A stretch of DNA of 64,000 bases. Source: Selaginella moellendorffii. Its lineage: Eukaryota; Plantae; Lycopodiophyta. This document shows, piece after piece, positions 18,548 through 45,729 of this stretch. The notes under the pieces were generated by a model. That model was not told the origin of the DNA. It saw nothing but the letters and a program-made list of their open reading frames with translations, and did no database searches. The stretch lies in the NCBI RefSeq assembly GCF_000143415.4, contig NW_003314400.1, positions 186,001 through 250,000 on the forward strand, written 5' to 3'. Both the position numbers and the translations under genes were made by a program. Within the stretch, counting starts at the first letter, position 1. Each line of letters begins with the position of its first letter.

Positions 18548-18627
18548 ATGGCTCATTGGAGCTCCAATTTGTATAGCTGAGAGGTTTCCGTTTCGAGTTG
18601 TGAGTCTTTCCTTTGGAATGGAAATTT

Positions 18628-21079: not shown

Positions 21080-21400
21080 GCTTATTCTGCGCAGAAGCTA
21101 CGACCACAAGAAGAGATCTCTATTCCAGATGCCTGCAAACTGATCAAGTTTGCCTGTAGTATCGTGTTTCGCACAAACTGGTATTCAGCGCAGCCGGGAT
21201 GCCTTGCGGAAACAAAGCTGTGCACGCGGCAAATTTGTGCTAAATTATTCTCTTGTATGCACCATTTGAGAAGATACACAAAGGCTCTTGACATTAATGT
21301 GTTGACATCCACGGTTCGCAAGAGATCTCCATACCTTCGCTTCCATCCAGGGCTCCAAGAACTTGGCATTCATAGATGTTGCTGCCGTGTGTCGAATCCA
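21080..21400 (-). pseudogene. Inverted copy of the PLS-PPR N-terminal fragment
   Basis: RAFVYLLKWCIQENNL..HSFVSARHPGCAEYQFVRNTILQA, the reverse complement of ~20365-20665. Confidence 0.8.
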
Positions 21401-21662
21401 CTGCAAACTCATCTAGCAGGATCTATGTATCTCATGACCAAGGAGCAAGCTCTAAACCCCTTGTAAAGTAGCGACAACTTCTCAGTGAATCCAGGTGCCA
21501 GGAATTGCTACATTGACCATGTGATGAGGAGAATAGCTTTGTAGTCAACCCGATCCAGGAGGTTGTACGGCACATTGTTGACCACGGCTAAATAAGAATA
21601 TTCTTAAAGGGATTTAGGATCAATATAAAAGGGTTTATTCTGCAAAACATTTCTAGGGTTAC

Positions 21663-22603
21663 ATGGCAATAGCTTTTGGACAGTTGGTTGCAAAACTTGA
21701 GGCTGAAAGGAAGATTGAAGTTATGTGGGATGTTGGTTGTTACTGTAATGCTATCTCACGAAAATTAGTGGAAGAACTCAATATCACAGTGGATATAAAT
21801 TGGCAAGTTAAGGATTTTAAATTCACAGTACAGGGTTGTAAATTCAAAGAAACTTTCACTGCATTACCACTTGTTTCACATAGCAGTGATATAATATTGG
21901 GTTCACCATGGATACATCAACATTGCCTACAATTAAATTGCAATGATAGTAAAAGTACAATAACATTTGAGATAGATGGTATTGTATATTGTCTTATTGG
22001 TGACAATAACTTATCTCGGCCAAGAAGGTTTAGAAGGATAAATCAACATATATGTAATACGTTTTATGATCTGTATTACCCTGGGAGAATCAATGACTAC
22101 GAAATCAAAATCGTAATAGATAATGGTTGTGACACATCAGCTATATCACTTGATCTTGTCAAGAAACTTGGACTCCCTACAATTCACAGTCACAAGTATT
22201 TTGGAATCAGGCCAATTGCAGCTGATCAATTGGAGGAGGTTATGGAGTTGAGAATTTAGCTTATAACTTGGGAAAGTTTTTTGAAAGAAGAACATTTGAT
22301 GTTCTTAAAGACTCCTCTGATAGTATATTTCTTGGGAAAGATTGGCTTGACAAGCACTCAGCAATTATTGACTTTAGAAATCACAATGTTACTTTTAAAT
22401 GCAGTGAATCAGGTTTGTGGTACAGATTTCAATATCCTCATGGTATTTATGAAGTGAGTAAAGATAAATTCAAGGAAGAGATGAATAGCTTGTGTTGGTG
22501 CTCCAACACTATAGAAGATCAAGCTGCAGTAAAACTTTCTAATCCCTATACCTGGAGAATGCCATCTTTTGGAGTCCTCCTGCAATGGTTTAGGTTGAGA
22601 TGA
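21663..22603 (+). pseudogene. Tandem retropepsin-domain protein, copy 1 (1-nt deletion near 22237)
   Basis: Colinear with 30911..31852. ggaggaggttat instead of ggaggaaggttat splits the ORF. A sequencing error cannot be excluded. Confidence 0.8.
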
Positions 22604-23009
22604 CCAAGGATGACAGACAGATAAACCCTATAATAAAAATAATGTGATATATATAAGTCTATAGATTTGCTTAGAGAGAGTGATCTTGGACGCCATCCAA
22701 GTCAGGTTGATCTGCCATCAGCAATGGAATCCAACCGCCCGTTTCTAACGGCTCAGGTCAAGTCAAGCGTAGTCAAACTTCTTCAAAGCTCAAGGAAGAA
22801 ATATAGCTACGTGACACCTGTCATATTCTAATTCCTCCCAGAAATTGTTGATCTTGAGCTTTTCGCTTTTTTCGTTTGTTCTTTGTTGAGTAATGTCTTT
22901 GTTAAAAAAACGGTCATTGAATAAAAAAGATTGATCGGAGCATCGTCCTTGCAAAGTGAACTTTTGTGCTCCATCAAGATCTCTGCATCAAAATCAAGAG
23001 ATGCAGTTT

Positions 23010-23290
23010 ACACCTCATGCACTGGAATACAAAGAGAAAGAGAGTGATGAAAACGAAAACGAAGAAAAGACCATGTTTGAATACCTTGTGTAGGACGGTC
23101 TTCCACGACGAAGTTATCACGTCCCCCTTGGAGCCCATGAAACCTGTGTAGCTTCCCAAGCCAACCGCGGTTTCCACACCGCAAGCAGCGTCTCGCTCCG
23201 CAAACCTCCGCTTTCGAGGCCACTAATCCATGGGCCTTCCGTGCTTGTCCAGGCTTTCACCGGACATGATTCTCTTGTTCCATTCTTCGT
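23010..23290 (-). pseudogene. MED16: MED16 3' fragment (inverted; also at ~32250-32530 and ~53805-54080)
   Basis: Reverse complement of ~38068-38380 (ETAVGLGSYTGFMGS..DVITSSWKT) with its intron. Confidence 0.8.
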
Positions 23291-24000
23291 CTCGGCTCAC
23301 ACCCAAGCCGGGGACTGGAGATGACTCTGTCGCTCTTCGCGGGAATGCAGCTGGATGGCGTCACTGCACACAGATGGAGTGCCTGCTCGAGCATTCCAGC
23401 TCCAGTGCGGTCGTGAGCACTGCATCCTCTTCCAGACCACCACTCTTTAGAAGTTCCTGGTAGAGGAGCTTGCCTTGCACTGGAGTGACATGTATGCCAG
23501 CTGCGGAGGCCTGGAAACCGCCGACAGGGACATGGTTTTCAAGGGCGACGTCTCGTGGACTGCGATGATCGCTGGATATGTGCGCAAAGAAAGCCGTGGA
23601 GCTCTTCTGGGAGGTGCTGGCACACGGCATGATCCCCGGGGCCGTGACGTTTCTCCACTTGTTCTCGGCAGCTTCATGGAGGAGTCGCGGTCGTACCTTT
23701 ACACGATGCTTGAGGACTACAAGCTGGTGCCGGAGCTGGATCACCAGGTCTGTGATTGATCGGCTTGCTGGGACGGCTCGACAGGGCCGATGAGCTGCTC
23801 CAAACCGGGCCTGGAGGACGCTGCTTTCGGCTTGCAAGACGCACACAACAAACAAGGATCGAGCGGACCAAGCGGCAAAGAAGAATAACAGCGAGCTCGA
23901 TCCGGGATGTGCTCCCATCCTCTCCAACTTAAACACCGATGCCGGGGAATGAAAAGGTGGAAGAAGCAACAGCCGCAGGGCCAGCTCCTCGCTGCTATGA
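23285..24000 (+). pseudogene. PLS-PPR fragment (module A', carries micro-inversion)
   Basis: DMYASCGGLETA, DVSWTAMIAGY. Paralog of 32525-33235 and 54075-54790. Confidence 0.8.
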
Positions 24001-26295
24001 TCCTCCAAGCCAGGAAACACGTAGCGAGCGCAGGAGTATACAAGTTGTGGCGAGAGGAAGGGAGTTGGGATCACGGAGACCAGCAAGCTCGGCCATCGTG
24101 GGGTGACGACGATCGAATAGTTCCACGCAAGACAAAGGTAGAGCTCGATTGCTGGAACGATTGCTACAGGCTGAGGCAGTGGGCTCTGAGGAACAAGAGC
24201 TCCTCCTCATCTCACTACTCGCTGGTGAGCCAGGAGAGCTACTTGAGATCCAACGCCAAGAAGGAGATGGAATTTTCTATGACAAAAAAGAGTCCTCCAA
24301 GGAGGAGCTCCAAGAACAGGATTTCTTACGAGCCAGAATGTAGCATTATAGAACTTTAAAAACCTTGCAAGAAATCTTGTGAAGATCACAGAAGAAAAAC
24401 ATAGCGAAGAACTTTACATAGAACAAAGTGGTAATTTAGTGAAGAACTTACTAAGATGCGAAGCTCACGGAAGAGAAATACCTACATCCTATTCCAATTC
24501 CTCCCCGAAATTGTTGATCTCGAGCTTTTCTCTTTTCTCGTTTTCGTTCTTTCTCTTCTTTCCTTGTCGAGTATTGTCTCTGTTAGAAAAACGGGCATTG
24601 AATGATCGCAGTATGACATCCTTGTAAATGCTTTTTTTGCTAGAATAGTGTAGCCATCCTGCGCAAATGAGTTGAGAAGTGTTGCTCATGACATGGTGTC
24701 GTCCTCGCAAAGAAGTTTCGTGCTCCATCAAGATCTCTGCACAACGATCGTCGAGCCTGGATTGATCAGTGCGAATCTCGTTCTATCCTATTGAATAGCT
24801 TCTTTGCTTCGAGAAAATCTTCATATGCCGAAATAATCACATTCCACTACACAGTCACTGATCATTCAAGCATCGCTGATCACGGTGACAATGGCATTGA
24901 AGCAAACCACGGAGTTTGATAAAAACAAGCCTCGTTTCCCGTTTTGGATTTCCCATAGGGTGTTTTGGATTTTGCCACGTGTAACTGGCGGGGTTTTAGG
25001 GCTTAGGCGCATTCCCCGGGAATCTCTCGCGCATCTCGGTGGTGCGGGCGGAGGATGATCCCCAGGTGCGGTGTGGTTGGATCTTTTCTCTTTTCTGGAT
25101 TTTCCATGGTAATGTTTGTTCCAGCCGTGTGCCTGTCAGCATAGCATCTTGTCTCAACTTGCCGCTGGTATGTACACAAGTGCTTATGTTACTTTGCCTG
25201 AATTGTCGTATACGTGTGTTGACTGAATGCTTTTTCTTCCAGAACTTGGAGAGCATATATCCCGCTTTTGCGCCCTGACGATGCAAACTCGAGATCTTTG
25301 CCTCAAGCTCAACTGTGGAAATCTGGTGCTGACGCTCCCGCGGCCAAAGCTGCTGTGACTCGGTGGTGCAACACTCATGTTGTTCGCGGCTAGATTGCTC
25401 ACGCTCGTAGTTTGGCGCGTCTCAACACATTCGGCTGTGTGAGGATCAAGGACCACTTGGGCGTCATGCAAGACATCGTTTACGTATGTCACATCCGGCT
25501 GGAGTTCGTATCAGTATGGTCTGGTCAGCATCTTAATCGCCAACGACGACGGATGTGCTTGATGTTTCAAGCTCTGTCACGAGAGAAGAAGGCCTTCCCA
25601 GCCTCCGGCTCCTTCCAATGAATCGTCTCCAAGCGCTGCTGGAGTCGCAGCAAAAGAGGACAAGACATCATGAACCAGTTTTCAATCACAAAGCCAGTAA
25701 TCTTTCTTTCGCTTTGATATTCTTCTACTTGAAAGGCTTTTGGACACAGGAGCGGAGAGGCTTCGACGTCTTCGAGTTTAAGAAGCAGGTTCTTCAAGTT
25801 TAGCTGCGACATGGATGAAGTTTATGAGAGCTGCACGGAATGACAGGACAATATCAGTGGAGCAGGGGGCGGCAAGAAGAAGGAAACGGCGGACCGCCAG
25901 CGAAATCTATCTATGACACGAGCGTAAGAAGTGTGTTAGTCATTGTATTCTAGTTTTTGATTTGATAGAGCTGTGATTTTGCCCAGGCAGCGCCCCCTCC
26001 TCGCGGGACAGGTCCTCCCGTGAGTTTCCTCCACCATCCTTTACAGGACTCGGAGCTCTTTACAGGAGTTCCACAAGGATATTTGCGTACTTAGTGCTTC
26101 TCTCGACGCTCACCGGAATCGATGCTTTATAGCGTGGGAAAAGGGATGAGCGCACAAAGAACAGGACTGTCCCTCCCCGCGAGCTGCTGCCTGAGCAATC
26201 CATTCCCGGAAACTTGACCGAGACGCCATCGTCAACATGAAGCGTGGCTCAAAGCAAAGCTTGCGTTCGTTCCGTGATCAGCTGGAAAAAAACTG

Positions 26296-27060
26296 AGCAT
26301 CAGCACCAGCACCAGCACCAGTAGCACGAACACCAGCACCAGTTCCGACACCAGCAGCACCTCCAGCACCAACAACGACAACACCACCAACCAGGTATGG
26401 CGACAGTTTTTTGATGTCTTCTCAGCCGAATTCTTATTCAGGAAACCAAGGAGGAGCCAGTTCATACACGTCCTTTGAGACTGGGAAGTGGAAATGCTGG
26501 TCAAGGCTATACAGCCGACGAGGTCTGCGCATTTCTTTTTGTTTTCATTTCCAGAAGCTCACCAGCTTTAACTGCAGGTGAAATATTTATTTCTCTTGTT
26601 GTTAGATCTATGCAAGAGAACAGCGCCGCTTGCTCATCCGTTCCCAAAGTTCCCCGTTGGAGCAAGCAACCCGAGCTTTAGACTACATTACATTGATGGA
26701 CAGTTCTCGGAGGTCCCCGAGATTGTCGAAGCTTCTCTTGGCCGACACATGCAGGTACTAGGGGAAGAAAAAAAAAAACAAATGGTTGGTCTCTTACGAG
26801 CTCATGGTTGTTTGCAGAATTTGCCTCGTCCTCGTGGAGCCGATGCTGCGGGATTCCTCATCGCGGAAGAATGGAACAAGAGAATCATGTCCGGTGGACC
26901 TTGGTCCGAGAGACTGGAAAGCCTGGACAAGCACGAAAGGCCCATGGATTTGTGGCCTCGAAAGCGGAGGTTTGCAGAGCGAGACGCTGCTTGCGGTGTG
27001 GAAACCGCGGTTGGCTTGGGAAGCTACGCAGGTTTCATGGGCTCCAGGCGGGACGTAGTG
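26296..27060 (+). pseudogene. MED16: Internally deleted MED16 3' fragment
   Basis: LRLGSGNAGQGYTADEV, YLFLLLLDLCKRTAPLAHP, RLHYIDGQF and WPRKRRFAERDAA. Confidence 0.85.
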
Positions 27061-27188
27061 ATCTTATTAGACTAGAGTTTACTTTTATCCAGATTAAGGT
27101 CAAAATAAAGCATTTGATTAGGTTTGAAAAAAAAAAGGTATATTCTTTTCTTTCCCTGGCTGGGCGGGAAAGCAACGAGAGGAGCGCG

Positions 27189-27494
27189 ATGGTGGAGAAG
27201 GAGAACAAGAAAGAGGGCAAGAGGAGAACGCCGAAGGACGGTCCACAGCAGATCAGCTTCACCAAGGAGAAGCGGCAGTCGCTGATCGGGGGATCCCCCA
27301 AGCCGGTAGAAGAATTTCACTTTCTTTGCGTTGAATCATTGCTTCTTGTTTTCTTCTTCCAGAAGGATGATCCTCCTCCTCCTCCTCCTCCTCCTCCTCA
27401 GCAGCAGCAGCACGATCCAGAGCCGGAGCTGGAGCTGGAGCCGGAGCCAAAGCCGCTGCAGCCGATCAAGTCGAATGCATGCATAATTCTCTAG
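27189..27494 (+). CDS. Putative small CaaX-terminated (CIIL) protein, ~82 aa, one 57-bp intron (27306-27362)
   Basis: MVEKENKKEGKRRTPK..SPKP|KDDP(n)Q(n)HDPEPE..KSNACIIL*. GT..polypyrimidine-CAG intron. May instead be the 3' end of a larger gene. Confidence 0.45.
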   Translation: MVEKENKKEGKRRTPKDGPQQISFTKEKRQSLIGGSPKPVEEFHFLCVESLLLVFFFQKDDPPPPPPPPPQQQQHDPEPELELEPEPKPLQPIKSNACIIL

Positions 27495-27503
27495 CTTGTT
27501 TCA

Positions 27504-28260
27504 TTGGAGGCCGCCGTGAGGCAACGAGCCGGCATCGCGCTGTGCCAATCGGTGAGTTGTTCCTTCTCCCGGACGATCGATTCCAGCGCGGCCTTGCGGC
27601 AGCGAATCGACGATGGGAATGCGGCTCAATCAAGCCCCATGGCGGGAATCGATCATAATCCAGTGCCAGGGCGCGGAAGCGGCGATCGAGGAGCAGGAAA
27701 GATCAAGCTGGAGGAGCTCTCCTTCAAGCCAGGGATCGCGGACAAGCCCTCCGGCAGTGGCGAGGTTTAGGCCACTGGCGATCTCGGCCGAGGCACAGGA
27801 GCTCCTGGACATCCTCGAGACAGAGATGGAGGAGGTGCGCGAGCGCAAGCTCCGCGACTACTGCGGCAAGCTCAGCACGGACATCGTGGTGGATGTGCTC
27901 AACCATGCCAGGGACGTGGAGGCGACGATCCAGTTCTTCGACTGGTGCCACGGCCGCCATGGCTACACGCACACGGCATTTGCCTTTAACCGGCTTCTCG
28001 AGTTCTTGGTGAACAAGCGGCAGTACAAGCGCGCGCACCAGATGCTCATCGCCCACAGCAAGCCGAGCTCGTTCCAGGCGAATGCTGTCACGTACTCGAC
28101 CATCGTCCGCGGCTACTGCGAGGATGGCGAGACGAGGCAGGCAGGCTCTGGCACTCCTGGAACACATGAAGAAGGCGGAAGTTCTAGCCAATACAACATC
28201 ATTCTCACGCGGCTGTGCAAGCATGGGAAGGAGAAGGAGGCTCACTCCCATCAAATAAGT
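27504..28260 (+). pseudogene. P-class PPR N-terminal fragment
   Basis: IVVDVLNH..IQFFDWC..GYTHTAFAFNRLLEFL, NAVTYSTIVRGYCEDG. Frameshifted and truncated. Confidence 0.85.
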
Positions 28261-28894
28261 AGCAGGGATGCAAACCAGTGAGCATCGTGTGAGGAAAGTT
28301 TGCAGTTTCTTCTAACGAAGATTTCTGTCAGGTGTCACTTCAACAAGTTCCGCCAGAATTAAACACGGGAAGAATGACTTGGCAAACAGTGAGCTTCCGT
28401 TTGATTCATTTTGACTGTTTTTGCTAATCTTTCCGTGTTTTGGTCGTGGGAAGTTTCAGCCGTCGAGAAGCTTCGACTATAGCTTCTTTTGCGTTTTTTA
28501 CTACTCTGATGCTATGACAAAGAAGAACTCCGTTTTGCAAGGTCCTAGAATGACATCTGCAACAGATCTCTGGCACTCAGGGATTGATAAATGGCTGCAC
28601 GAGATCATGGTATTGTCCCTTCTCGCCCCTCGATTTCAGCTCACTGGATTTTTTAAATTTTTTTTTCAGGAGCTTTCAGGAATGCTTCCATTTGAGCACT
28701 GACAGCTGCGATCTCGAACAGAGCTTTGCACCAGCAGGATCGGGAAAGGAAGTTGGGTTTCAAACCTTTGAGGATCATGGTCTAGGAGCTGAGACAACAG
28801 CATAAACAAGTAGCTCTGGTGAGTTTCGTTTGAAAAAATTTCCGATATTTCACAGGTATCCAAGCTGGCTTTTTTTTCTCTATTCGTTTTGTTA

Positions 28895-29560
28895 ATCAGG
28901 CTGTATGGAAGGAGTGGGTTTCGTGGTGTGTAGAGTTCGGCGTTGACGCACCCTACGAGATTGGCGGGTCCAGTTCTCCTCGAACGAGATCTGTACTTCC
29001 ACAGGCTGAGGTTTTGCCTTCTCAAACAGAATCACCTCTTGTTTTTCTGATCTCTCATTCCAGGCTAACTTTCGAGACGCTTCGGAAGCTGCGAGGGGGG
29101 CCAAGAGTATGCGCGAAAACGAGTGACGGCCCTCGTTTTCGCGCATTCTCTTGGGAATAATGTGTTCAGATATTTTCTGGAATGGTTGAAACAAGAAGTA
29201 CCGCCCAAACTGTACACCACTTGGATCGACGATCACATTTTCACGTATCATGCTCTAGGTGAGATTGGCGGATTGTGAACTTTCTTAGCAGCAATGCTAT
29301 CTCTTGCAGGTGCTCCTTTTCTAGGAGCTCCAGATGCTCTGAAAGGCGTTCTTTCTGGGGTGACGGTTGGATTAACCAATTTCAGAGGTTCGTTAAAGCT
29401 GTTTTGGGACTTCGCAACGTCATTGACTTTTACTTCGTTTTGATAGGGTGCAGCTCGAATCATGCTTAGAACTTTCAGTTCCGGTTTGTGGATGTTGCCG
29501 TTTTCTGACGACAAATCACTGTCTCAAAGGAATACGACCAAAACGAAAGGCTTAGTTGCT
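28895..29560 (+). pseudogene. PSAT1: PSAT1 fragment, copy 2
   Basis: Reverse complement of 3130-3790. Confidence 0.85.
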
Positions 29561-29804
29561 CCAGACTTCGCTGAGCTTCTCTGGCTCACCAGCGAGTAGT
29601 GAGACGAGGAGGAGCTCTTGTTCCTCAGAGCTCGCTGCCTCAGCTTGTAGTAATCGTCCCAACAATCGAGCTCCACCCTTGTCTTGCGTTCTATCATCAT
29701 CACCGCGCGACAGCCGAGCTTGCTGGTCTCCGTGATCCCAACTCCCTCCCTCTCGCCACAACTTGTGTAGTCCTAAGCTCACTACGTGTTTCCTGGCTTG
29801 GAGG

Positions 29805-30680
29805 ATCATAGCAACGAGGAGCTGGCCCTGCAGCTGTTGCTTCTTCCGCCTTTGCATTCCCCAGCATCGGCGTTTAAGTTGGAGAGGATGAGAGCGACAT
29901 CCCGGATCGAGCTTGCTGTTATTCTTCTTTGCCGCTCGGTCCGCTCGATCCTTCTTGTTGTGCGTCTTGCAAGCCGAAAGCAGCGTCCTCCAGGCCCGGT
30001 TTGGATCAGCTCATCGGCCCTGTTGAGCCGTCCCAGCAAGCCGATCAATCACAGACCTGGTGATCCAGCTCCTGCACCAGCTTGTAGTCCTCGAGCATCA
30101 TATAAAGGTACCACCGCGACTCCGACGAGAACAAGTGGACAAACGTCACGGCCCCCGGGGCTCAAGCCGTTTGCCAGCATCTCCCAGAAGAGCTCCACGG
30201 CTTTCTAGATCGTTGCGCACATATCCAGCGATCATCGCAGTCCACGTGACTTCGTCCTTGAAAACCATGTCCCAGAACAACCTCTCGGCAGTTTCCAGGC
30301 CTCCGTAGCTGGCGTACACGTCGAGCAATGCGGTCGTGAGCACTGCATCGTCTTCCAGGCCACCGCTCTCCAGAAGTTCCTGGTAGAGGAGCTTGCCTTG
30401 CACTGGTGCAGGAATGATCGAGCAGGCAGTGAGAGCACTCGATCTGTGTGCAGCAGGGCGAACACTGGAGGCGGCTGCGAAGGATTGCCGCGAATTTGTG
30501 CTAGATTATTCTCCTGTACGCACCCTTTGAGAAGATACACAGAGGCTCTCGACACTGATGTGTTGACATCCACGGTTCGCGAGAGATCTCCATACCTTCG
30601 CTTCCATCCAGGGCTCCAAGAACTTGGCATTCACAGATGCTGCTGCCGTGTGTCGAATCTGCTGCAAACTCATCTAGCAG
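29805..30680 (-). pseudogene. PLS-PPR fragments (module A plus N-terminal piece), inverted
   Basis: TALLDVYASYGGLETAERLFWDMVFKDEVTWTAMIAGY. Confidence 0.85.
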
Positions 30681-30910
30681 GATCTATGTATCTTATGACC
30701 AAGGAGCAAGCTCTAAACCCCTTGTAAAGTAGCGACAACTTCTCAGTGAATCCAGGTGCCAGGAATTGCTACATTGACCATGTGACGAGGAGAATAGCTT
30801 TGTAGTCAACCCGATCCAGACCACGGCTAAATAAGGATATTCTTAAAGGGATTTCTTTTAAATAGGATCAATATAAAAGGGTTTATTCTGCAAAACATTT
30901 CTAGGGTTAC

Positions 30911-31852
30911 ATGGCAATAGCTTTTGGACAGTTGGTTGGAAAACTTGAGGCTGAAAGGAAGATTGAAGTTATGTGGGATGTTGGTTGTTACTGTAATGCT
31001 ATCTCACGAAAATTAGTGGAAGAACTCAATATCACAGTGGATATAAATTGGCAAGTTAAGGATTTTAAATTTACAATACAGGGTTGTGAATTCAAAGAAA
31101 CTTTCACTGCATTACCACTTGTTTCACATAGCAGCGATATAATGCTGGGTTCACCATGGATACATCAACATTGCCTACAATTAAATTGCAATGATAGTAA
31201 AAGTACAATAACATTTGAGATAGATGGTATTGTATATTGTCTTACTGGTGACAATAACTTATCTCGGTCAAAAAGGTTTAGAAGGATAAATCAACATATA
31301 TGTAATATGTTTTATGATCTGTATTACCCTGGCAGAATCAATGACTACGAAATCAAAATCGTAATAGATAATGGTTGTGACGCATCAGCTATATCACTTG
31401 ATCTTGTCAAGAAACTTGGACTCCCTACAGTTCACAGTCACAAGTATTTTGGAATCAGGCCAATTGCAGCTGATCAATTGGAGGAAGGTTATGGAGTTGA
31501 GAATTTAGCTTATAACTTGGGAAAGTTTTTTGAAAGAAGAACATTTGATGTTCTTAAAGACTCCTCTGATAGTATATTTCTTGGGAAAGATTGGCTTGAC
31601 AAGCACTCAGCAACTATTGACTTTAGAAATCACAATGTTACTTTTAAATGCAGTGAATCAGGTTTGTGGTACAGATTTCAATATCCTCATGGTATTTATG
31701 AAGTGAGTAAAGATAAATTCAAGGAAGAGATGAATAGCTTGTGTTGGTGCTCCAACACTATAGAAGATCAAGCTGCAGTAAAACTTTCTAATCCTTATAC
31801 CTGGAGAATGCCATCTTTTGGAGTCCTCCTGCAATGGTTTAGGTTGAGATGA
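30911..31852 (+). CDS. Tandem retropepsin (Ty3/gypsy-type aspartic protease) double-domain protein, 313 aa, copy 2 (intact)
   Basis: Two units: VMWDVGCYCNAIS..LV..L..DIMLGSPW and IVIDNGCDASAIS..LVKKLGL..SIFLGKDWL..IDF. Intronless and AT-rich; TATA (atataaaa ~30871) upstream and aataaa downstream. Confidence 0.8.
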   Translation: MAIAFGQLVGKLEAERKIEVMWDVGCYCNAISRKLVEELNITVDINWQVKDFKFTIQGCEFKETFTALPLVSHSSDIMLGSPWIHQHCLQLNCNDSKSTITFEIDGIVYCLTGDNNLSRSKRFRRINQHICNMFYDLYYPGRINDYEIKIVIDNGCDASAISLDLVKKLGLPTVHSHKYFGIRPIAADQLEEGYGVENLAYNLGKFFERRTFDVLKDSSDSIFLGKDWLDKHSATIDFRNHNVTFKCSESGLWYRFQYPHGIYEVSKDKFKEEMNSLCWCSNTIEDQAAVKLSNPYTWRMPSFGVLLQWFRLR

Positions 31853-32524
31853 CCAAGGATGACAGACAGATAAACCCTATAATAAAAATAATGTGATATA
31901 TATAAGTCTATAGATTTGCTTAGAGAGAGTGATCTTGGACGCCATCCAAGTCAGGTTGATCTGCCATCAGCAATGGAATCCAACCGCCCGTTTCTACGGC
32001 TCAGGTCAAGTCAAGCGTAGTCAAACTTCTTCAAAGCTCAAGGAAGAAATATAGCTACGTGACACCTGTCATATTCCAATTCCTCCCAGAAATTGTTGAT
32101 CTTGAGCTTTTCGCTTTTTTCGTTTGTTCTTTGTTGAGTAATGTCTTTGTTAAAAAAACGGTCATTGAATCAAAAAGATTGATCGGAGCATCGTCCTCGC
32201 AAAGTGAACTTTCGTGCTCCATCAAGATCTCTGCATCAAAATCAAGAGATGCAGTCTACACCTCATGCACTGGAATACAAAGAGAAAGAGAGTGATGAAA
32301 CGAAAACGAAGAAAAGACCATGTTTGAATACCTTGTGTAGGACGGTCTTCCACGACGAAGTTATCACGTCCCCCCTGGAGCCCATGAAACCTGTGTAGCT
32401 TCCCAAGCCAACCGCGGTTTCCACACCGCAAGCAGCGTCTCGCTCCGCAAACCTCCGCTTTCGAGGCCACTAATCCATGGGCCTTCCGTGCTTGTCCAGG
32501 CTTTCATGATTCTCTTGTTCCATT

Positions 32525-33235
32525 CTTCGTCTCGGCTCACACCCAAGCCGGGGACTGGAGATGACTCTGTCGCTCTTCGCGGGAATGCAGCTGGATGGCG
32601 TCACTGCACACAGATGGAGTGCCTGCTCGAGCATTCCAGCTCCAGTGCAAGGCAAGCTCCTCTACCAGGAACTTCTAAAGAGTGGTGGTCTGGAAGACGA
32701 TGCAGTGCTCACGACCGCCCTGGTCGACATGTACGCCAGCTGCGGAGGCCTGGAAACCGCCGACAGGGACATGGTTTTCAAGGGCGACGTCGCGTGGACT
32801 GCGATGATCGCTGGATATGTGCGCAAAGAAAGCCGTGGAGCTCTTCTGGGAGATGCTGGCACACGGCATGAGCCCCGGGGCCGTGACGTTTGTCCACTTG
32901 TTCTCGGCAGCTTCATGGAGGAGTCGCGGTAGTACCTTTACACGATGCTTGAGGACTACAAGCTGGTGGAGCTGGATCACCAGGTCTGTGATTGATCAGC
33001 TTGCTGGGACGGTTCGACAGGGCCGATGAGCTGCTCCAAACCGGGCCTGGAGGACGCTGCTTTCGGCTTGCAAGACGCACACAACAAACAAGGATCGAGC
33101 GGACCAAGCGGCAAAGAAGAATAACAGCGAGCTCGATCCGGGATGTGCTCCCATCCTCTCCAACTTAAACACCGATGCCGGGGAATGAAAAGGTGGAAGA
33201 AGCAACAGCCGCAGGGCCAGCTCCTCGCTGCTATG
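32525..33235 (+). pseudogene. PLS-PPR fragment (module A')
   Basis: TALVDMYASCGGLETA..DVAWTAMIAGY. Confidence 0.85.
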
Positions 33236-34313
33236 ATCCTCCAAGCCAGGAAACACGTAGCGAGCGCAGGAGTATACAAGTTGTGGCGAGAGGAAGGGAG
33301 TTGGGATCACGGAGACCAGCAAGCTCGGCCATCGTGGGGTGACGACGATCGAATAGTTCCACGCAAGACAAAGGTAGAGCTCGATTGCTGGAACGATTGC
33401 TACAGGCTGAGGCAGTGGGCTCTGAGGAACAAGAGCTCCTCCTCATCTCACTACTCGCTGGTGAGCCAGGAGAGCTACTTGAGATCCAACGCCAAGAAGG
33501 AGATGGAATTTTCTATGACAAAAAAGAGTCCTCCAAGGAGGAGCTCCAAGAACAGGATTTCTTACGAGCCAGAATGTAGCATTATAGAACTTTAAAAACC
33601 TTGCAAGAAATCTTGTGAAGATGACAGAAGAAAAACATAGCGAAGAACTTTACATAGAACAAAGTGGTAATTTAGTGAAGAACTTACTGAGATGCGAAGC
33701 TCACGGAAGAAAACTACCTACATCCTATTCCAATTCCTCCCCGAAATTGTTGATCTCGATCTTTTCTCTTTTCTCGTTTTCGTTCTTTCTCTTCTTTCCT
33801 TGTCGAGTATTGTCTCTGTTAGAAAAACGGTCATTGAATGATCACATCCTTGTAAATGCTTCTTTTGCTAGAATAGTGTAGCCATGCTGCGCAAATGAGT
33901 TGAGAAGTGTTGCTCATGACATGGTGTCGTCCTCGCAAAGAAGTTTCGTGCTCCATCAAGATCTCTGCATAACGATCGTCGAGTCTGGATTGATCAGTGA
34001 GAATCTCGTTCCATCCTATCGAATAGCTTCTTTGCTATCTTCATATGCCGAAATAATCACATTCCACTACACAGTCACTGATCATTCAAGCATCGCTGAT
34101 CACGGTGACAATGGCATTGAAGCAAACCACGGAATTCGATCAAAAACAAGCCTCGTTTCCCGTTTTGGGTCCCGCGCATGGATTTCCCATACATGTCGTC
34201 ATGGGTGTTTTGGATTTTGCCACGTGTAACTGGCGGGGTTTTAGGGCTTAGGCGCATTCCCCGGGAATCTCTCGCGCATCCCTGCGCCTCGGTGGCGCCG
34301 GCGGAGGAGCTAA

Positions 34314-37300
34314 ATGGATGCTGCCCCGGCAGCGGCTCCTCCAGCCACTGGCGACAAGGGCAGCGATGGCGAGGAGGAGAATCCAGCTGCAGCCGATGGC
34401 GATGACGAGAGCAGCACAATCCTCCAGCGGCGGAGGGATTTCAAATCTTTCAGGCAAGAACAGTGCGATCAGTGGCAGGGAATGCGATTGCTGACACGCG
34501 ATGGACGCTTGAAATTTCGCAGCATTGGCGCCGCTTGGTGTGGGAAAACGAACATAATCGCCTGCGCCACGGAGACTTGTGCGAGAGATCCAGGGTATGG
34601 ATGGTTTCTCTCTCGAGATGAAAATTCTGGTTTCCTAGTTCTCGGCAGAAGCCTACGTTCTGGATTCCAGTCCATCTCGTCGATCCTGAGAGGCCCACAG
34701 AGCACGCAATCTTCAACGTGGTTGCTGGTGAGTGAATTTTATTCTTCCAAGAATCTACTTTTTCTCTCTTTTTTTTTCTCTTGTGCTGTGCTCTAGACAC
34801 TCCTTGTGATTCCATCGCCTTCATCGAGTGGTCTCCTCCCAGCTGCGAGCGTGCGCTTTTAGTGGTGAATTCTCGTAACCATCCAAAGTATGTCTTTTTT
34901 TCTCTTTCTTTCCTTCTGTTTATACATTGTTCCTCAGGGCCCCTTGAATGTGGCACGGGCATTTAATTGCTGGAATTGTGAGCACGAATGGAGGCAAGAT
35001 CAAGCAGTTGTCACGAAATGGATCACTCCACAGTATTCGGTGAGCTCAGAGTTATCCTTTCTCGGCTTAGCTTTAAACTATGTTTTCAGTACCAATGGAC
35101 GGAACTTCACCACTGTTTGAGGAAAGATTCCTAGCACGTCAAGCTACAATCTCTGGTGATCAAAGTTTACATTCGAAAGTTCGTCCGTCTCGCGCTAACC
35201 TTCGCTAACTTGCAGCTAAATGGCCGAATTTTCTTTGTGCTTGCATCGTTTTATCGTCGGGTGTGGTGCAACTCCGATGGCGGCGGTCGCCTCTCAAAGA
35301 CTCCTCTACGCCAGTTTGGTACTCGTCAAGCAGAGGTGTTTTAGGAGCTGGGCCGAGTGGAATCTATGCTGCAGATGTTATCGTCAACGACGCTGGCTCC
35401 TTGATAGTTGCAGGAGTGCCTATCGGTAATCCTTCTACAATTGTCATCTGGGAGATCACTCCAGGCGTATTTAATGGTCAGCAGCTGATGAAGCTTGGTG
35501 CGTCGCCTCTACCATTTACTGCTCCTTCATGGCCGGGGATGGCATCGTTGGCAGCGTATCTTCTCAGTTGGCAGGAGCTTCGCGAGAAGGACCTTCCTGA
35601 CAAGGAAGGTCCTTTGCTGCAGTGCTCGCCAATTTCAAACTTGTCCGCCTACGTGAGTCCGGAGGCGTCCACTGGATCGAATGTAGCAGCTTGGGGAACC
35701 GGAGTGGCAGCAGTGGCATTCGATCCGGAAAAGCAAGGGACGGCGCTTCTTGTTGTGATAGTTGAAGGTTTGGTCGTCAATATTATCGTTCTTTGCTCAT
35801 TCTTTTTCTCTCTGTCTCTACAGGACAATATATGTCCCCAAAACATCCTGATGGAGGGCCTTCTATGACCGGATGGAAGTTTCAAAGGTGGGAAAGTTCA
35901 CGGCAACAAGTGGCCATACACTCTGTTTTTGAGGCAGGAGCTGCGAATTACGGTGCTATGTCGCATCCTATGGCTACAACATGGAAAACAGTCGTGAACA
36001 AGAGCTTTCCTCAGACAAAGCTGGCCATGTCGTATAATAAACGAGGGCGGGACGCTTCGAGCAGCATGGATACAGGTGACGCTGCGGCCGAGGAACAGGA
36101 AACAGAGCCTTTACCCGTCGTCAAGTGTATCGCAAAAGTTCGCTTCAGCGGTCACGGGGGAGAAGTTGCGGTGGCACTCTTAGGTGGCGAAGTTCACTTG
36201 TTCTCTGGCCCTGGGCTGGTTCCGGTCGAGAACTTCTGCGTCCAAGTCGGGCTTTTGGTTGCATCTCCAGCTCTATCTGCTTCCGGTTGCTGCCTCTCAT
36301 GTGCCTGGCATGACACAGACTCCGACACCAGCTTCTTGAAGATTGTTCGTGTTCGATCCCTTTCATCATCTGGGCCTACAACTGCGCCCCTGGAACGCCA
36401 GATAGCCGACAGGTAAGTTCCTTCTTTGGGTGAAGTAGATGCTCAACCATTTGATGAAACAGATTTTGGTGGAGCTTGGTAACTCAACTTGATTGGTGGG
36501 ACGCTATTGCGTACTCTCAAAGCGCTGCTGACGAAGGCCTAGGTAGTTTTTCATGTCTCGATCATCTCCCGCGCGTGCTAATTCATGCCTTTTATGTTTG
36601 TCAGTTTCTCTAGGGGCAATTGCAGCGGTTCTAGATTCATTCTTTGCCAAATGCAGGTCATCGTCAGCATTACGGTCTGGATCACATTAAGTGTAGGATG
36701 TTAGAGGGGGCAGATGCTGCTGAAGTAAGAGTACTTGTCCTTGATCAGGCCAGATTTTTCTTGCAAGTCCTAGGCAAAGGCATAGAAGCAGCACTCGTTA
36801 ATCCTTCGACGCTTATTCTCGACCCTTGGCAAGCACCCAGCGAAACTCCGACAGGTCTTGGCGGTGAAGCCATGCTTGTTGATCCAGCTCTCGTTCATCA
36901 AATTCAGGTTCGTTTCGACACTTGCAACAACACTGTCATTGAAACGCTCTCGTGCAGTCTTACGTCGACGTGATTTTGGATCTAGCGTCTCACTTTTTGA
37001 CCCGATTGCGGAGATACGCAAGCTTTTGCCGAACTCTTGCTGCTGTCAAAGCACCAAGCTCAAACGGTCCTCCCGCAGGATCTCAGCCTCCAGCGCCAGC
37101 ACCAGCACCAGCACCAGCACCAGTAGCACCAGCACCAGCACCAGTTCCGACACCAGCAGCACCTCCAGCACCAACAACGACAACACCACCACCGCTGCCG
37201 CCACCAGGTATGGCGAAAGTTTTTTGATATCTTCTCAACCGAATTCTTATTCAGGAAACCAACCTGGTGGCGCCAGCAGCAATGGTGGAAACGCTCAAGT

Positions 37301-38523
37301 CCACGCTTGGATACAAGGTGCCGTGGCGAAGATGAGCAACACTGATACCGCCACAGTTGCTCCTGCGGCGCCACCTCTAAGCATGAGCACATCGACGTTT
37401 CCTGGCATCCCTGCGGTTCGTCTCATCGGAGACTGCTACTTCCTGCACAAGCTCTGTCAGCTCCTCCTCTTTTGCCTGGTCTTTCGCAAGAGACAACTCC
37501 CACGGTACATGGGAAAGTCGGAAGTAGCGCCCGTCAAAGCAGAGGAGTCCGCCAACAATGGACCTCGTCTAATGCCTACTGTAAAAACTGAGGATGGCCA
37601 AGTTGCAAAAGCTGCTTTGGTTCAGCCGTCCAAGGAGGAGCCAGTTCATACACGTCCTTTAAGACTGGGAAGTGGAAATGCTGGTCAAGGCTATACAGCC
37701 GACGAGGTCTGCGCATTTGTTTTTGTTTTCATTTCCAGAAGCTCACGAGCTTTAACTGCAGGTGAAATATTTATTTCTCGTGTTGTTAGATCTATGCAAG
37801 AGAACAGCGCCGCTTGCTCATCCGTTCCCAAAGTTCCCCGCTGGAGCGAGCAACCCGAGCTTTAGACTACATTACATTGATGGACAGTTCTCGGTGGTCC
37901 CCGAGATTGTCGAAGCTTCTCTTGGCCCACACATGCAGGTACCCAAAACAAAAACACAAATGGTTGGTCTCTTACGAGCTCCTGGTTCTTTGCAGAATTT
38001 GCCTCGTCCTCGTGGAGCCGATGCTGCGGGACTCCTCATGCGTGAGCTGGAGCTCCATCCGCCCGCGGAAGAATGGAACAAGAGAATCATGTCCGGTGGA
38101 CCTTGGTCCGAGAGACTGGAAAGCCTGGACAAGCACGAGAGGCCCATGGATTTGTGGCCTCGAAAGCGGAGGTTTGCGGAGCGAGACGCTGCTTGCGGTG
38201 TGGAAACCGCGGTTGGCTTGGGAAGCTACACAGGTTTCATGGGCTCCAGGCGGGACGTGATAACTTCGTCGTGGAAGACCGTCCTACACGCAGTCTGGCA
38301 CAAGGTATTCAAACATGGTCTTTTCTTCGTTTTCGTTTTCATCACTCTCTTTCTCTTTGTATTCCAGTGCATGAGGTGTGGACGGCAAACTGCATCTCTT
38401 GTCCCGTGGTCCCCGAATTCACAGGCCAGTGCTGTGCCTTCAAATTCTCGCGAGGCATGGTGGACTGGAAGATGGGCGTATTCGTGTCCGATGTGTGGTG
38501 GTCACTGGGTCCGAGTGGTATGA
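34314..38523 (+). pseudogene. MED16: Near full-length Mediator subunit 16 (SFR6) pseudogene
   Basis: AWCGKTNIIACATETCARDP, FWIPVHLVDPERPTE, FIEWSPPSC, CEHEWRQDQAVVTKW, LGAGPSGI..AGVPIGNPSTIVIWE and terminal WWTGRWAYSCPMCGGHWVRVV*. Introns are retained, but small deletions break frame (near 34880 and 35100). Confidence 0.9.
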
Positions 38524-38879: not shown

Positions 38880-39545
38880 TTTAAGCTTTTGAACAGTTGA
38901 TCTAACGCTGAAAGGAAGATTAAAGTTGAGTGAGATTGTGGTTGTTATTATGTCACAAAAATTAACAGAAGAATTCAATATCACATTGGATAAAATTTGT
39001 CATGTTAAGGATTTTAAATTTACAAGACACGCCTGTGAATTAAAAGAAACTTTCACTATATTACCACTTGTTTCAAATAACAATATAATGTTAGGGAGAA
39101 TCAATGACTACGAAATCAAAATCCTAATAGATAATGGTTGTGGAACATTAGCTATATCACTTGATCTTGTCAAGAAACTTGGACTCCCTATAGTTCACAG
39201 TCACAAGTATTTTGGAATGAGGCCACTTGCAGCTGATCAATTGGACAAAGGTTCTGGTAACTTATAACTTGGGAAAGTTTTTTGAGAGAAGAACATTTGG
39301 TGTTCTTAAAGACTCCTCTGATAGTATATTTCTTGGGAAAGATTGGCTTCACAAGCACTCAGCAGTTATTGACTTTAGAGATCACAATGTTACTTTTAGA
39401 GTAAAGATAAATTCAAGGAAAAGATGAATAGCTTGTGTTGGTGCTCCAACACTATAGAAGATCAAGCTGCAGTAAAAATTTCTGATCCTTTTACCTGGAG
39501 AATGCCATCTTTTGCAGTCCTCCTGCAATGGTTTAGGTTGAGATA
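38880..39545 (+). pseudogene. Tandem retropepsin protein, decayed copy 3
   Basis: VKDFKFT..KETFT.LPLVS..IMLG joined directly to RINDYEIKILIDNGC, followed by frameshifts. Confidence 0.8.
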
Positions 39546-40839
39546 TAATAAAATAATGTGATCTTTTGTACATATTGTTCACAGGGCTTCCATCTTTGCA
39601 TAGAGAGACTGATCTTGGACGCCATGGTGGCGAGTCCATGCACAGCCAGGTCGAGTTGATCTGCCATCAGCAATCGAATTCAACCGCCCGTTTCAAAATT
39701 ACAAGATTTAACGGCTCATGCCAAGTCAAGCGTAGTCAAACTTCTTCGAAGCTCACGGAAGAAAAGTAGCTACGTGACTACTTCCTCGAAATTGTTGATC
39801 TCGAGTTTTTCTCTTTTCTCATTTTTGTTCTTTCTCTTCTTTCCTTAACCAGTATTGTCTTTGTTAGAAAAACGGTCATTAAATCAAAGGGATTGATCGG
39901 AGCATTCTGATAAATGTTGCCCATGACACGGCGTCGTCCTCGCAAAGTGAACTTTCGTGCTCCATCAAGATCTCTGCACAACGATCGTCGAGTCTGGATT
40001 GATCCTTTTGTTGTGAGAATCATGATCTTGTTCCATCCTATTGAGCTTCTTTGCTTCGAGAAAATCCACGACGGTGACAATGGCATTTAAGCTCCTCCCG
40101 ATTGCTGTTTTCGTGGATTTTGCCACGTGTAGCATGCGAGGGTTTAGGGCTTACCCGGGAATCTCTCGCGCATCCGGCGGTGTTCTTTTGCTGGTCTTCC
40201 AGGTTACATCTTGTTTCATCACCAGAAGCTATATAGCTTGGAATTGCCGCTGGTATGTGTTTTCCCTCACACACACACAAGTGCTTATGTTACTTTGCCT
40301 GAATTGGCTACATGTGCTCTTACGCATTTAACTGAATGCTTTTTCTTCCAGAACTTGGAGAGCATATATCCGGCTTTTGTGCTTAACACCGCAGGAACAA
40401 GAGCGGAGAGGCTTCGACGTCTCCCATCTCAAGGCACTTTAAGAAGCAGTTTGGCGCGTCTCAACACATTCGGCTGTGTGAGGATCAAGGACCTCTTGGG
40501 CGTCATGTAAGACATCCTTCACGTATGTCACATCCAGATGGAGTTCCTATGAGTATAGTCAAGGCCAGGTTCTACAGCAGGTTCAAGTTTAGCTGTGACA
40601 TGGATGAAGTTTATGAGATGACACAACAATATCAATGGAGCAGAGGGCGGCAAGAAGAAGGAAACGAATGACCGCTAGCGAAATCTATCTACACGAGTGT
40701 AAGAAGTGTGTTGCCATTTTATTTTAGTTTTTGATTTGATAGTGCTATGTTTTTGCCCATCCTCCTCGCGGGACAGCTCCTCCCGTGAGTTTCCTCCACC
40801 ATCCTTCTGCGAGCAAGGACTCCAAGATCCGCGAAGGCG

Positions 40840-42448: not shown

Positions 42449-43815
42449 GGTATGGTACCTAAGCATATGAAAACATGTAGGCCATCAAGAACAGAAGTTT
42501 GTAAGATAACTCACTGTGGAATCACCACTCGCAACACCACCTTTTCCATCGACATCTAATCCTGACCTGTTGCAATGGTTTTTAGAAATGATCTTGTTTA
42601 CAAAGTGCTTACCTTGTCTGCAACGAACCTCCATCTGTTTCATAGATGACATCCTTGATAATTGGGTACGGCTTTCCACTCGGAGACAGTTGATAGCCAA
42701 CCTGCATTTCACAACTCAATCTTTCCACTATAAGGTTTTCAAAGAGGACTAACCTCAGTCTTAAGATTGATACCATACATGCAAAACACATTTTCGATCG
42801 GCAGCCGCTCCCATGGAGTTAGTGGATTGAACAACGGATTATCCAAGTAGTATCTGAGAATTAGGAAGTAGTTTAGTAATCACACACTTCTTGAGCTGAT
42901 AGAAAGCCAGTTTAGCTTGAGGATCAAATTCACCCATCTCCTTGAAGCTTGTGCCATCCGATATTTTTTGAGCTGAATAAAACCGCTGGATAGGAACTGT
43001 GTAATTTGCTAGAGCTGCAAGGGCTCCGTTTTCCAAAAACTCACCAGGATAGACCACCCCTGCCAAAGTGGACAAAAATTGGATAACGCATTAATAAGCC
43101 ATTCGTTTGTTACCAGAACTTGGCATGTCCACCTCAAGCACGTCGACAGGCCAGTCTGGGGCAACTAAGCCTTTCGTTTTGGTCGTATTTCTTTGAGACA
43201 GTGGTTTGTCGTCAGAAAACGGCAACATCCACAAACCGGAACTGAAAGTTCTAAGCATGATTCGAGCTGCACCCTATCAAAACGATGTAAAAGCCAATGA
43301 GTTGCGAAGTCCCAACAGCTTTAACGAACCTCTGAAATTGGTAATCCAAACGTCACCCCAGAAAGAACGCCTTTCAGAGCATCTGGAGCTCCTAGAAATG
43401 GAGCACCTGCAAGAGATAGCATTGCTGGTAAGAAGGTTCACAATCCGCCAATCTCACCTAGAGCATGATACGTGAAAATGTGATCGTCGATCCAAGTGGT
43501 GTACAGTTTGGGCGGTACTTCTTGTTTCAACCATTCCAGAAAATATCTGAACACATTATTCCCAAGAGAATGCGCGAAAACGAGGGCCGTCACTCGTTTT
43601 CGCGCATACTCTTGGCCCCCCTCGCAGCTTCCGAAGCGTCTCGAAAGTTAGCCTGGAATTAGACATCAGAAAAACAAGAGGTGATTCTGTTTGAGAAGGC
43701 AAAACCTCAGCCTGTGGAAGTACAGATCTCGTTCGAGGAGAACTGGACCCGCCAATCTCGTAGGGTGCGTCAACGCCGAATTCTACACACCACGAAACCC
43801 ACTCCTTCCATACAG
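42449..43815 (-). pseudogene. PSAT1: Longest PSAT1 fragment (copy 3), extends into C-terminal exons
   Basis: Adds DWPVD, ISDGTSFKEMGEFDP..YQLKK, NPLTPWERLPIENVFCMYG.NLKTE, PSGKPYP.IIKDVIYETDG and GDSTVPY, then breaks. Confidence 0.88.
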
Positions 43816-44459
43816 CCTGATTAACAAAACGAATAGAGAAAAAAAAGCCAGCTTGGATACCTGTGAAATATCGGAAATTTTTTCAAACGAAACTCACCAG
43901 AGCTACTTGTTTATGCTGTTGTCTCAGCTCCTAGACCATGATCCTCAAAGGTTTGAAACCCAACTTCCTTTCCCGATCCTGCTGGTGCAAAGCTCTGTTC
44001 GAGATCGCAGCTGTCAGTGCTCAAATGGAAGCATTCCTGAAAGCTCCTGAAAAAAAAAATTAAAAAATCCAGTGAGCTGAAATCGAGGGGCGAGAAGGGA
44101 CAATACCATGATCTCGTGCAGCCATTTATCAATCCCTGAGTGCCAGAGATCTGTTGCAGATGTCATTCTAGGACCTTGCAAAACGGAGTTCTTCTTTGTC
44201 ATAGCATCAGAGTAGTAAAAAACGCAAAAGAAGCTATAGTCGAAGCTTCTCGACGGCTGAAACTTCCCACGACCAAAACACGGAAAGATTAGCAAAAACA
44301 GTCAAAATGAATCAAGCGGAAGCTCACTGTTTGCCAAGTCATTCTTCCCGTGTTTAATTCTGGCGGAACTTGTTGAAGTGACACCTGACAGAAATTTCGT
44401 TAGAAGAAACTGCAAACTTTCCTCACACGATGCTCACTGGTTTGCATCCCCGCTACTTA

Positions 44460-45233: not shown

Positions 45234-45312
45234 GGATCGCTAAACCCTAAATTTCAATTGCAAGAACAAAGAATTTTGGATTGCGCCATCGCCGCCATGG
45301 CCATGAAACAAG

Positions 45313-45603: not shown

Positions 45604-45729
45604 CGCGCTCCTCTCGTTGCTTTCCCGCCCAGCCAGGGAAAAAAAAGAATATACCTTTTTTTTTTCAAACCTAACCAAATGCTTTATTTTGACCTTAATC
45701 TGGATAAAAGTAAACTCTAGTCTAATAAG

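Follow-up and report, generated by a model that had tools for sequence, protein, structure and literature searches.

Aspartic proteases related to the retropepsins are known in several arrangements, and we compare with them here an open reading frame (ORF) of 313 codons from Selaginella moellendorffii, in which two retropepsin-like units follow one another in a single chain. The frame lies within a stretch of 64,000 nucleotides (nt) of contig NW_003314400.1 (positions 186,001 to 250,000; below, "the window" is the whole of this stretch, and positions are counted within it), and its two units are referred to as the N-unit and the C-unit. Engineered tethered dimers of the HIV-1 protease consist of two identical units joined by a short linker, while the pepsins (family A1) carry their flap on the N-terminal lobe. 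The pepsins are held to descend from a retropepsin-like unit that was duplicated and fused, yielding two lobes with one Asp each and a single flap, as the proposal of Tang et al. (1978) is cited in PMC2642776. Among domesticated retropepsin-like proteins, DDI1 and ASPRV1/SASPase are conserved and expressed single-domain homodimers with a D-S/T-G triplet, and the Thr or Ser has been described as essential for the fireman's grip and for dimer formation (PMC7072860).

Relative to the proteases of Ty3/gypsy elements (RVP_2 and gag-asp_proteas), the C-unit is an ordinary representative in both sequence and fold, whereas the product as a whole has two domains per chain, no Thr or Ser after the Asp, and an N-unit devoid of a flap; further, the gag, reverse transcriptase, RNase H, integrase and long terminal repeats (LTRs) of such elements are absent at the locus. 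DDI1 and SASPase provide the best solved-structure matches for both units, but the Selaginella product has no UBL or UBA domain, and neither expression nor purifying selection was detected for it. With the engineered HIV-1 protease dimers (PDB 4ep2, 1lv1 and 3n3i, which were among the Foldseek matches), it shares two retropepsin units arranged head to tail, although its units are only ~22% identical (~78% diverged), its linker is ~30 residues long and basic, and one flap is gone; the match to 4ep2 was poor (TMt 0.43, root-mean-square deviation (rmsd) 9.5 Å, on a low-confidence model). Its likeness to the pepsins lies in the two units, in the catalytic Asp that each retains, and in the single flap segment. 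In contrast to the pepsins, that segment sits on the C-terminal unit, the two lobes take up ~250 residues rather than ~325, and both triplets are non-canonical. A Pfam scan of the protein at E up to 10 returned no match to the A1 family, and Foldseek alignments with plasmepsins, though long, had template modelling (TM) scores of 0.25-0.32 and an rmsd of 13-15 Å, on a model with a predicted TM score (pTM) of 0.44.

Our results support a product in which two diverged Ty3/gypsy-type retropepsin domains are joined in one chain. We read the ORF itself, with a probability of roughly 0.55, as a tandem-protease (PR-PR) relic left by a Ty3/gypsy (chromovirus-like) element, orphaned, silent and neutrally evolving, which segmental duplication has carried along.

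Two retropepsin units in one chain

The ORF exists as it was first described, beginning with an ATG and running from 30911 to 31852 on the plus strand (GL377704.1:216911-217852 in assembly GCA_000143415.2). Its openness is not a product of chance, since the probability of 313 open codons at the composition of the AT-rich island around it is ~6e-12, and 1000 shuffles gave a longest open run of 153 codons, as against the 315 observed. The presence of two tandem retropepsin-like units, proposed in the preliminary description, was borne out by different evidence for each. The C-unit (residues 136-248) matched Pfam RVP_2 at E 3.9e-8 and 33.6 bits (cut-off 20.3) and Asp_protease_2 at 31.1 bits (above the curated cut-off of 24.3), with further matches to gag-asp_proteas and Asp_protease, and sequence matches to the solved protease domains of SASPase and DDI1 in the PDB. 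The N-unit taken alone matched RVP_2 only, scoring 17.2 bits (E 0.0046) where 20.3 are required; of the two domain hits looked for in Pfam, one cleared its threshold and the other did not. The N-unit was identified by its match to the C-unit in BLASTP (E 8e-5) and to a profile of 41 gypsy-type proteases in hhalign (96.7% probability, E 3.2e-10), an alignment that places D23 on the catalytic Asp and G80 on the glycine of the ILG motif. Five gypsy-type protease proteins also matched the N-unit within another copy of the frame, c1, in tBLASTn (E 3e-5 to 4e-4). The 65-residue tail that ends the protein had no Pfam match and, when compared with what follows the protease domain in 11 relatives, showed no resemblance to any of it (z below 1.4).

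Both units keep the Asp and the Gly of the catalytic triplet, and direct reading of the sequence confirmed that the residue between them is Val in the N-unit (DVG) and Asn in the C-unit (DNG), with Thr and Ser absent from both. Neither unit therefore has the D-[T/S]-G by which a retropepsin triplet is recognised; among the 41 nearest relatives, D[ST]G was present in 37 and DNG in 2. The glycines of the ILG-type motifs, G80 and G225, were invariant in the alignments, and the C-unit shows in addition a D-x-G-C loop, a helix after that loop and a flap segment. The lack of a flap-length segment in the first unit and its presence in the second, both noted earlier, were seen by hhalign and in the alignment as a single 17-residue gap falling exactly at the N-unit flap hairpin. 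As for the lost Thr/Ser, the tether between the units could have relaxed the need for the grip, or the loss could be simple decay, which explains it equally well.

Structure prediction with AlphaFold2 (AF2) gave the C-unit predicted local distance difference test (pLDDT) values of 80-93, although residues 181-190 of its flap segment were modelled below 50. The full-length model matched DDI1 protease domains in Foldseek at TMt 0.65-0.70; it is of low confidence overall (pTM 0.44, N-unit pLDDT 40-67) and too uncertain for the packing of the lobes. Folded alone on a forced protease alignment, the N-unit reached a pLDDT of 86.4 and matched DDI1 protease domains at TM 0.64-0.70, which, since an alignment of true proteases steers such a model, indicates compatibility with the fold rather than independent proof of it. 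Co-folding of residues 1-118 with residues 128-256 gave an ipSAE of 0.57 in all three runs, with 0.00 for the best of three controls, partner pLDDT of at least 75 (75-77) and agreement between runs over at least 63% of contacts. This is a weak pass: the mark was reached by 51 of 78 solved complexes and by 2 of 108 mismatched pairs, and scores of 0.60 or under came from only 5 of the 78 solved complexes, along with all 4 of the mismatches that passed (of 180). It may also reflect memory, as retropepsin dimers have already been solved. The N-unit and the C-unit may, on this modelling, pack as a pseudo-dimer, and the product, if translated, would probably fold as one, with doubtful catalytic power. 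Of the pseudo-dimer idea put forward at the outset, the two retained Asp residues, the one retained flap and the loss of both grip residues stand, together with the weak co-folding pass, while a working enzyme is not supported.

Relatives, copies and the question of a working gene

Derivation from Ty3/gypsy proteases, suggested earlier, was supported by the family matches of the C-unit, by the single-domain gypsy proteases among its relatives and by the context of one of these, P0002. An exhaustive phmmer search of 1.84 billion representative proteins returned only 48 matches at E up to 0.001, the best real relatives being single-domain gypsy proteases with 25-37% identity. Those nearest to the C-unit (P0002, P0003 and P0006) were fern or unplaced gypsy proteases, and the closest, P0002, comes from a chromovirus-type contig with protease, RNase H, integrase and chromodomain and likewise carries DNG. 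Four multi-stretch matches (P0001, P0005, P0028 and P0045) were rejected as spurious, being repetitive proteins without protease domains. No multi-protease relative of the ORF appeared among the 1.84 billion representatives, and neither the full ORF nor the N-unit brought up a homologue in word-index searches. By Smith-Waterman (SW) score, other gypsy proteases (61-83) are at least as near to the N-unit as its own C-unit is (59), suggesting either that the tandem arrangement is old or that the N-unit has diverged fast.

The same two-domain layout was encountered in P0009, a 299-aa double retropepsin with two Pfam stretches, encoded at positions 3-902 of a 1,324-bp JGI/Logan contig that we take, from its record numbers, to be part of a marine eukaryotic metatranscriptome. 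P0009 can be aligned over both units of the Selaginella product at 25% identity (E 5e-13). In contrast to the latter, it has retained both flap segments and the canonical triplets DTG and DSG, and each of its units resembles the other much more (SW 148, z 25) than it does either Selaginella unit, which argues for an independent fusion. Because its frame starts at the contig edge, P0009 may represent only a portion of a larger protein. In Atlas feature searches, the neighbourhoods of the ORF and of P0009 held only short clusters of single-domain size (104-206 aa), and an Atlas shape search gave plant gypsy protease proteins and polyproteins. Full-text literature searches found no description of a natural tandem retropepsin. 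A large survey of plant LTR elements removed elements encoding multiple copies of one domain type as likely mispredictions (PMC6317226), so a tandem-protease gypsy lineage could have been missed.

That no gag, reverse transcriptase, integrase or LTR lies near the ORF, as previously reported, was confirmed by tBLASTn and by self-comparison of the window. Gypsy polyproteins verified to contain gag, reverse transcriptase, RNase H and integrase matched only the four protease positions in the window and revealed none of these other genes there, and a sensitive small-database search around each copy, at E up to 5, still returned protease positions only. The ATG sits directly after in-frame stops, which close the frame to any gag extension upstream. 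Self-comparison showed inverted repeats only, with no direct, LTR-like repeats flanking the ORF, and no LTR, target-site duplication, end resembling a primer-binding site (PBS) or other element gene could be defined around the four copies. By these features the locus does not qualify as a Ty3/gypsy LTR element.

The four copies of the frame (c1 to c4, with c2 denoting the ORF described above; Table 1) stand where they had been reported, c2 and c3 being intact, c1 frameshifted and c4 decayed. The claim that the gene itself had been amplified four times did not hold, since the duplicated units are blocks of 3.8-5.3 kb and not the gene alone. The sharing of such blocks by c1, c2 and c3 points to segmental duplication, accompanied by inversion, of PPR-rich DNA that took the ORF along as a passenger. 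Copy c4 shares pieces of both flanks of a ~1.6-kb unit, beyond the ORF, and a 170-280 nt piece, found at 32250-32528 beside c2, is inverted on the other side in c4. We found no consistent terminal inverted repeat around the ORF copies, and neither an empty site nor defined ends of the AT-rich island or of the ~2-kb unit that encloses c2.

The region of these copies shows, in addition, a mosaic of very young direct and inverted duplications between 43153-57336 and 26300-37142. It includes inverted 2.56-kb arms around c3 (49068-51619 and 54776-57336, 99.5% identity) and an inverted match of 33371-37142 to 46199-49963 (99.4%). The mosaic could be either a palindromic rearrangement hotspot in the PPR-rich region or an assembly artefact of two haplotypes.

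These observations bear on the improbable case that the ORF is the cargo or a fragment of an unrecognised, still active family of mobile elements, in whose life cycle it would function and of which the window copies would be a local cluster. Such a family could be a gypsy lineage with two or three tandem protease domains in its polyprotein, or a non-autonomous derivative. The composition of the ORF is like that of transposable elements, at least one more member of the family is seen in contigs from other runs, and c4, the older copy, has the flanks of the ~1.6-kb unit in common with the others and not the ORF alone; the filtering applied in the plant LTR survey could, moreover, have left such a lineage overlooked. 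Yet none of the element features sought at the four copies was definable, the 65-residue tail is unlike the post-protease regions of 11 relatives, and no multi-protease relative came out of the phmmer search, while the 3.8-5.3 kb of PPR-pseudogene flank common to three copies speaks for segmental duplication rather than transposition.

Turning to expression, none of the reads in two raw RNA-seq runs of the same species (9.2 million reads each, ~12% of each run) fell on the ORF at 95% identity or above. Two assembled runs hold pieces of the family. A 229-nt piece carries 7 differences from c2, just as many as separate c1 from c2 over that stretch, and the three of them whose positions were listed are all among those of c1; we take this piece to be identical to c1. 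A 210-nt piece comes from a family member outside the window and has an in-frame 3-nt deletion.

Selection was judged from the copies. As the preliminary description had counted, c1 and c2 differ by 11 amino-acid changes with few silent ones (11 non-synonymous and 5 synonymous substitutions). Substitutions between them amount to 1.7% over the ORF and 1.0% over the non-coding 3' flank, and the ORF is conserved no better than that flank. A naive ratio of non-synonymous to synonymous rates (dN/dS) of 0.35-0.54 had suggested weak constraint. This was rejected once the transition bias was counted: 14 of the 16 changes are transitions (14:2), at which the synonymous share expected under neutrality is 0.30, against 0.31 observed, and the apparent constraint vanishes. 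Between c2 and c4, 5 synonymous changes stand against 55 non-synonymous ones. The earlier caution that the copies show no purifying selection was therefore justified, and the substitution pattern fits neutrality.

The composition and annotation of the ORF are likewise unlike those of a host gene. Its GC content at third codon positions (GC3) is 0.28, as against 0.48-0.67 in the Dof, PPR and ATPase genes of the window. The public record has no gene call at c1, and a collection of 15 billion proteins contains no exact product of c1, c2 or c3 (four possible starts for c2 and c3), though it includes the gene calls of the scaffold. In this limited sampling, the ORF showed neither the expression nor the purifying selection nor the host-like composition of a domesticated host gene. 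The combined evidence does not support the working stand-alone gene originally envisaged, given the missing reads, the neutral substitutions, the foreign GC3 and the absence of annotation, while leaving room for conditional expression. Nor does it support an independently evolved pepsin-like enzyme.

We accordingly regard as unlikely a functional stand-alone gene, whether domesticated or selfish, that encodes a single-chain pseudo-dimeric aspartic protease and is expressed only in another tissue, at another stage or under stress. In such a protein, the units would pack like a retropepsin dimer and bring D23 and D153 into one site under the C-unit flap, and the tether would make the grip dispensable. 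Its appeal lies in a frame intact, far beyond chance, in both c2 and c3, in the retention of both Asp residues and both ILG-type glycines despite the divergence of the units, and in a one-sided flap loss reminiscent of pepsins; the co-folding prediction, the in-frame deletion in the family member outside the window and the existence of another natural double retropepsin, P0009, also agree with it. These points have to be set against the zero reads, the neutral pattern of the substitutions with no better conservation than in the 3' flank, the non-synonymous excess between c2 and c4, a GC3 unlike that of host genes, and a frame broken in two of the four copies. Further, both triplets depart from D[ST]G, the public record leaves the ORF unannotated, and the TATA-like box lies so near the ATG that almost no leader would result.

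Our preferred explanation, the silent PR-PR relic, can be set out as follows. A tandem duplication of the protease domain inside a Ty3/gypsy element would have produced PR-PR. The flap hairpin of the N-unit has been lost, and the Thr/Ser of D-[T/S]-G is replaced in both units. In the element of origin, the two fused domains would have paired within one molecule to form a pseudo-dimer with a single flap, which would have made protease activation independent of polyprotein dimerisation. The coding piece is now left alone in an AT-rich island between PPR-pseudogene arms and has been multiplied as a passenger of local 3.8-5.3 kb duplications into two young intact copies, one frameshifted copy and one old, decayed copy. 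We infer that the ORF is not a working host gene but silent or nearly so, and neutral, and that the two intact copies are still open because they are young.

Several points weigh against this explanation. First, two of the four copies are intact, and the local copies are too young for a powerful test of selection. Second, both Asp residues, the Gly that follows each, and the ILG-type glycines have been kept while the units diverged, which suggests long constraint on PR-PR, at least in the element of origin. Third, the RNA-seq survey was confined to two samples of unspecified tissue and condition, and the two assembled runs that hold pieces of the family are only guessed to be RNA. Finally, the complex of the two units did pass in prediction, if weakly, and the parent element with tandem proteases is a putative one.

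Surroundings of the reading frame

The GC content is 0.35 within the ORF and 0.50-0.54 in its flanks. The TATA-like and polyA-like signals credited to the ORF are present as strings, but such strings are expected in DNA of 34% GC. The ~2-kb unit with the ORF is enclosed by head-to-head inverted arms, which belong to a 2.27-kb repeat with seven occurrences in the window in both orientations; as weak PPR Pfam matches occur in this repeat family, we read it as PPR pseudogene sequence. The description of the ORF as the only long intact frame in a 37-kb block of debris was overstated, since a PPR gene and pseudogene copies lie within the block, with a PPR gene model at 27189-29469. Among 20 other ORFs of the block, Pfam detected nothing but PPR fragments, and no Rfam family was found in 20000-58000.

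Table 1. Positions in the window of the tandem-retropepsin ORF, its parts, its copies and associated features.
Feature	Position	Strand	Details
Tandem-retropepsin ORF (copy c2)	30911-31852	+	313 codons; two retropepsin domains and a 65-residue tail
N-unit	30923-31222	+	residues ~5-104; flap-less retropepsin-like domain; IMLG motif with G80
N-unit catalytic triplet D23-V24-G25	30977-30985	+	direct reading of the sequence
Basic linker	31223-31318	+	residues ~105-136; modelled as disordered, AF2 pLDDT 23-45
C-unit	31319-31654	+	residues ~137-248; Ty3/gypsy-type retropepsin domain with flap segment; IFLG motif with G225
C-unit catalytic triplet D153-N154-G155	31367-31375	+	direct reading of the sequence
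C-terminal tail	31655-31849	+	residues 249-313; no detectable relatives; pLDDT <45
AT-rich island around the ORF	30800-31930		GC 0.34; 1.1 kb; contains TATAAAAG and AATAAA
TATA-like box TATAAAAG	30872-30879		upstream of the ORF, 32-39 nt before the ATG
AATAAA	31881-31886		downstream of the ORF; polyA-like string
Left arm of inverted repeat flanking the ORF unit	29574-30428	-	PPR-pseudogene sequence; copy of the 2.27-kb repeat at 2172-4446
Right arm of inverted repeat	32620-33476	+	~90% complementary to the left arm; PPR-like motif on the + strand
Copy c1	21663-22603	+	split into ORFs of 198 and 111 aa by a 1-nt deletion (ORF position 574); differs from c2 by 16 substitutions
Copy c3	52445-53386	+	intact; 3 substitutions from c2
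Copy c4	38880-39546	+	old, decayed; 219 codons aligned at ~91% identity; lacks the start codon and has one in-frame stop and several deletions
Segmental-duplication block with c2	28192-33476		collinear with 49992-55023 (c3); 97.4-98.9% over 5.3 kb
Part of block with c2	30487-34280		collinear with 21226-25035 (c1); 3.8 kb, 95.1%
Other positions of the ~170-nt expressed piece	23051-23259, 53843-54051, 45736-45875; 38119-38387, 26917-27056		the last two inverted

Two short stretches near the ORF have counterparts in expressed sequence. A piece of ~170 nt that recurs in every duplication block is covered at an RNA-seq depth of ~50-100 by reads 95-99% alike (32286-32540), this being the only read-covered stretch near the ORF. 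These reads run into unlike sequence (at 32335/32336 and 32505), so the piece looks like a fragment of a highly expressed gene elsewhere, and because the first mates all lie on the plus strand, the RNA is probably from the minus strand. The 40 nt at 30453-30492, at the junction of the left PPR-like arm and the ORF unit, match expressed contigs (one of 1,764 nt) and raw RNA reads exactly, with unlike sequence on both sides.

The window carries genes for a Dof zinc-finger protein, for PPR proteins and for a STAND-type ATPase. By direct string match it corresponds to GL377704.1:186001-250000, the contig for which one of its PPR proteins is on record, and the best named relative of that PPR protein, at 65% identity, is from S. 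moellendorffii. An intact 253-aa Dof zinc-finger ORF (5950-6711, +; PF02701, E 1.3e-23) is an ordinary host gene and served as a reference for composition. Adjoining the PPR cluster, a 454-aa ORF (7654-9018, -), for which the public record has a 482-aa gene, encodes a STAND-type NTPase with matches to ATPase_2 (PF01637, described as "predominantly from Archaea"), AAA_16 and, weakly, nSTAND1. Immediately upstream of a PPR ORF at 18613-20031, a tandem-repeat tract (17991-18480) shows 75-85% similarity to itself when shifted by ~70-210 nt.

Bearing on the retropepsin-to-pepsin transition

To our knowledge, no young natural intermediate of the fusion that leads from a retropepsin to a pepsin is on record. 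The original proposal of a pepsin-like gene is partly supported, in that the architecture is real and unusual while a functional gene of this kind is unsupported. As the ORF is best read as a silent relic, its value is that of a lead into a genome-wide family rather than that of a gene. It indicates that tandem retropepsin fusions do arise in nature, and with the asymmetries predicted for the path to pepsin, namely, one flap lost and both grip residues replaced; together with P0009, it indicates that such a fusion has happened at least twice independently.

A bolder and rather doubtful extension is that Selaginella carries a gypsy-derived lineage of single-chain aspartic proteases, in which fused units, the loss of one flap and a dispensable grip would amount to a recent natural replay of the retropepsin-to-pepsin transition, with the ORF as an intact, conditionally expressed member; alternatively, the protein might pair with the monomers of retrotransposon proteases and so poison these enzymes. 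Were any family member in Selaginella to prove active, the early steps of the retropepsin-to-pepsin transition would become testable at the bench, and the question would arise of why a retrotransposon lineage would tether its protease.

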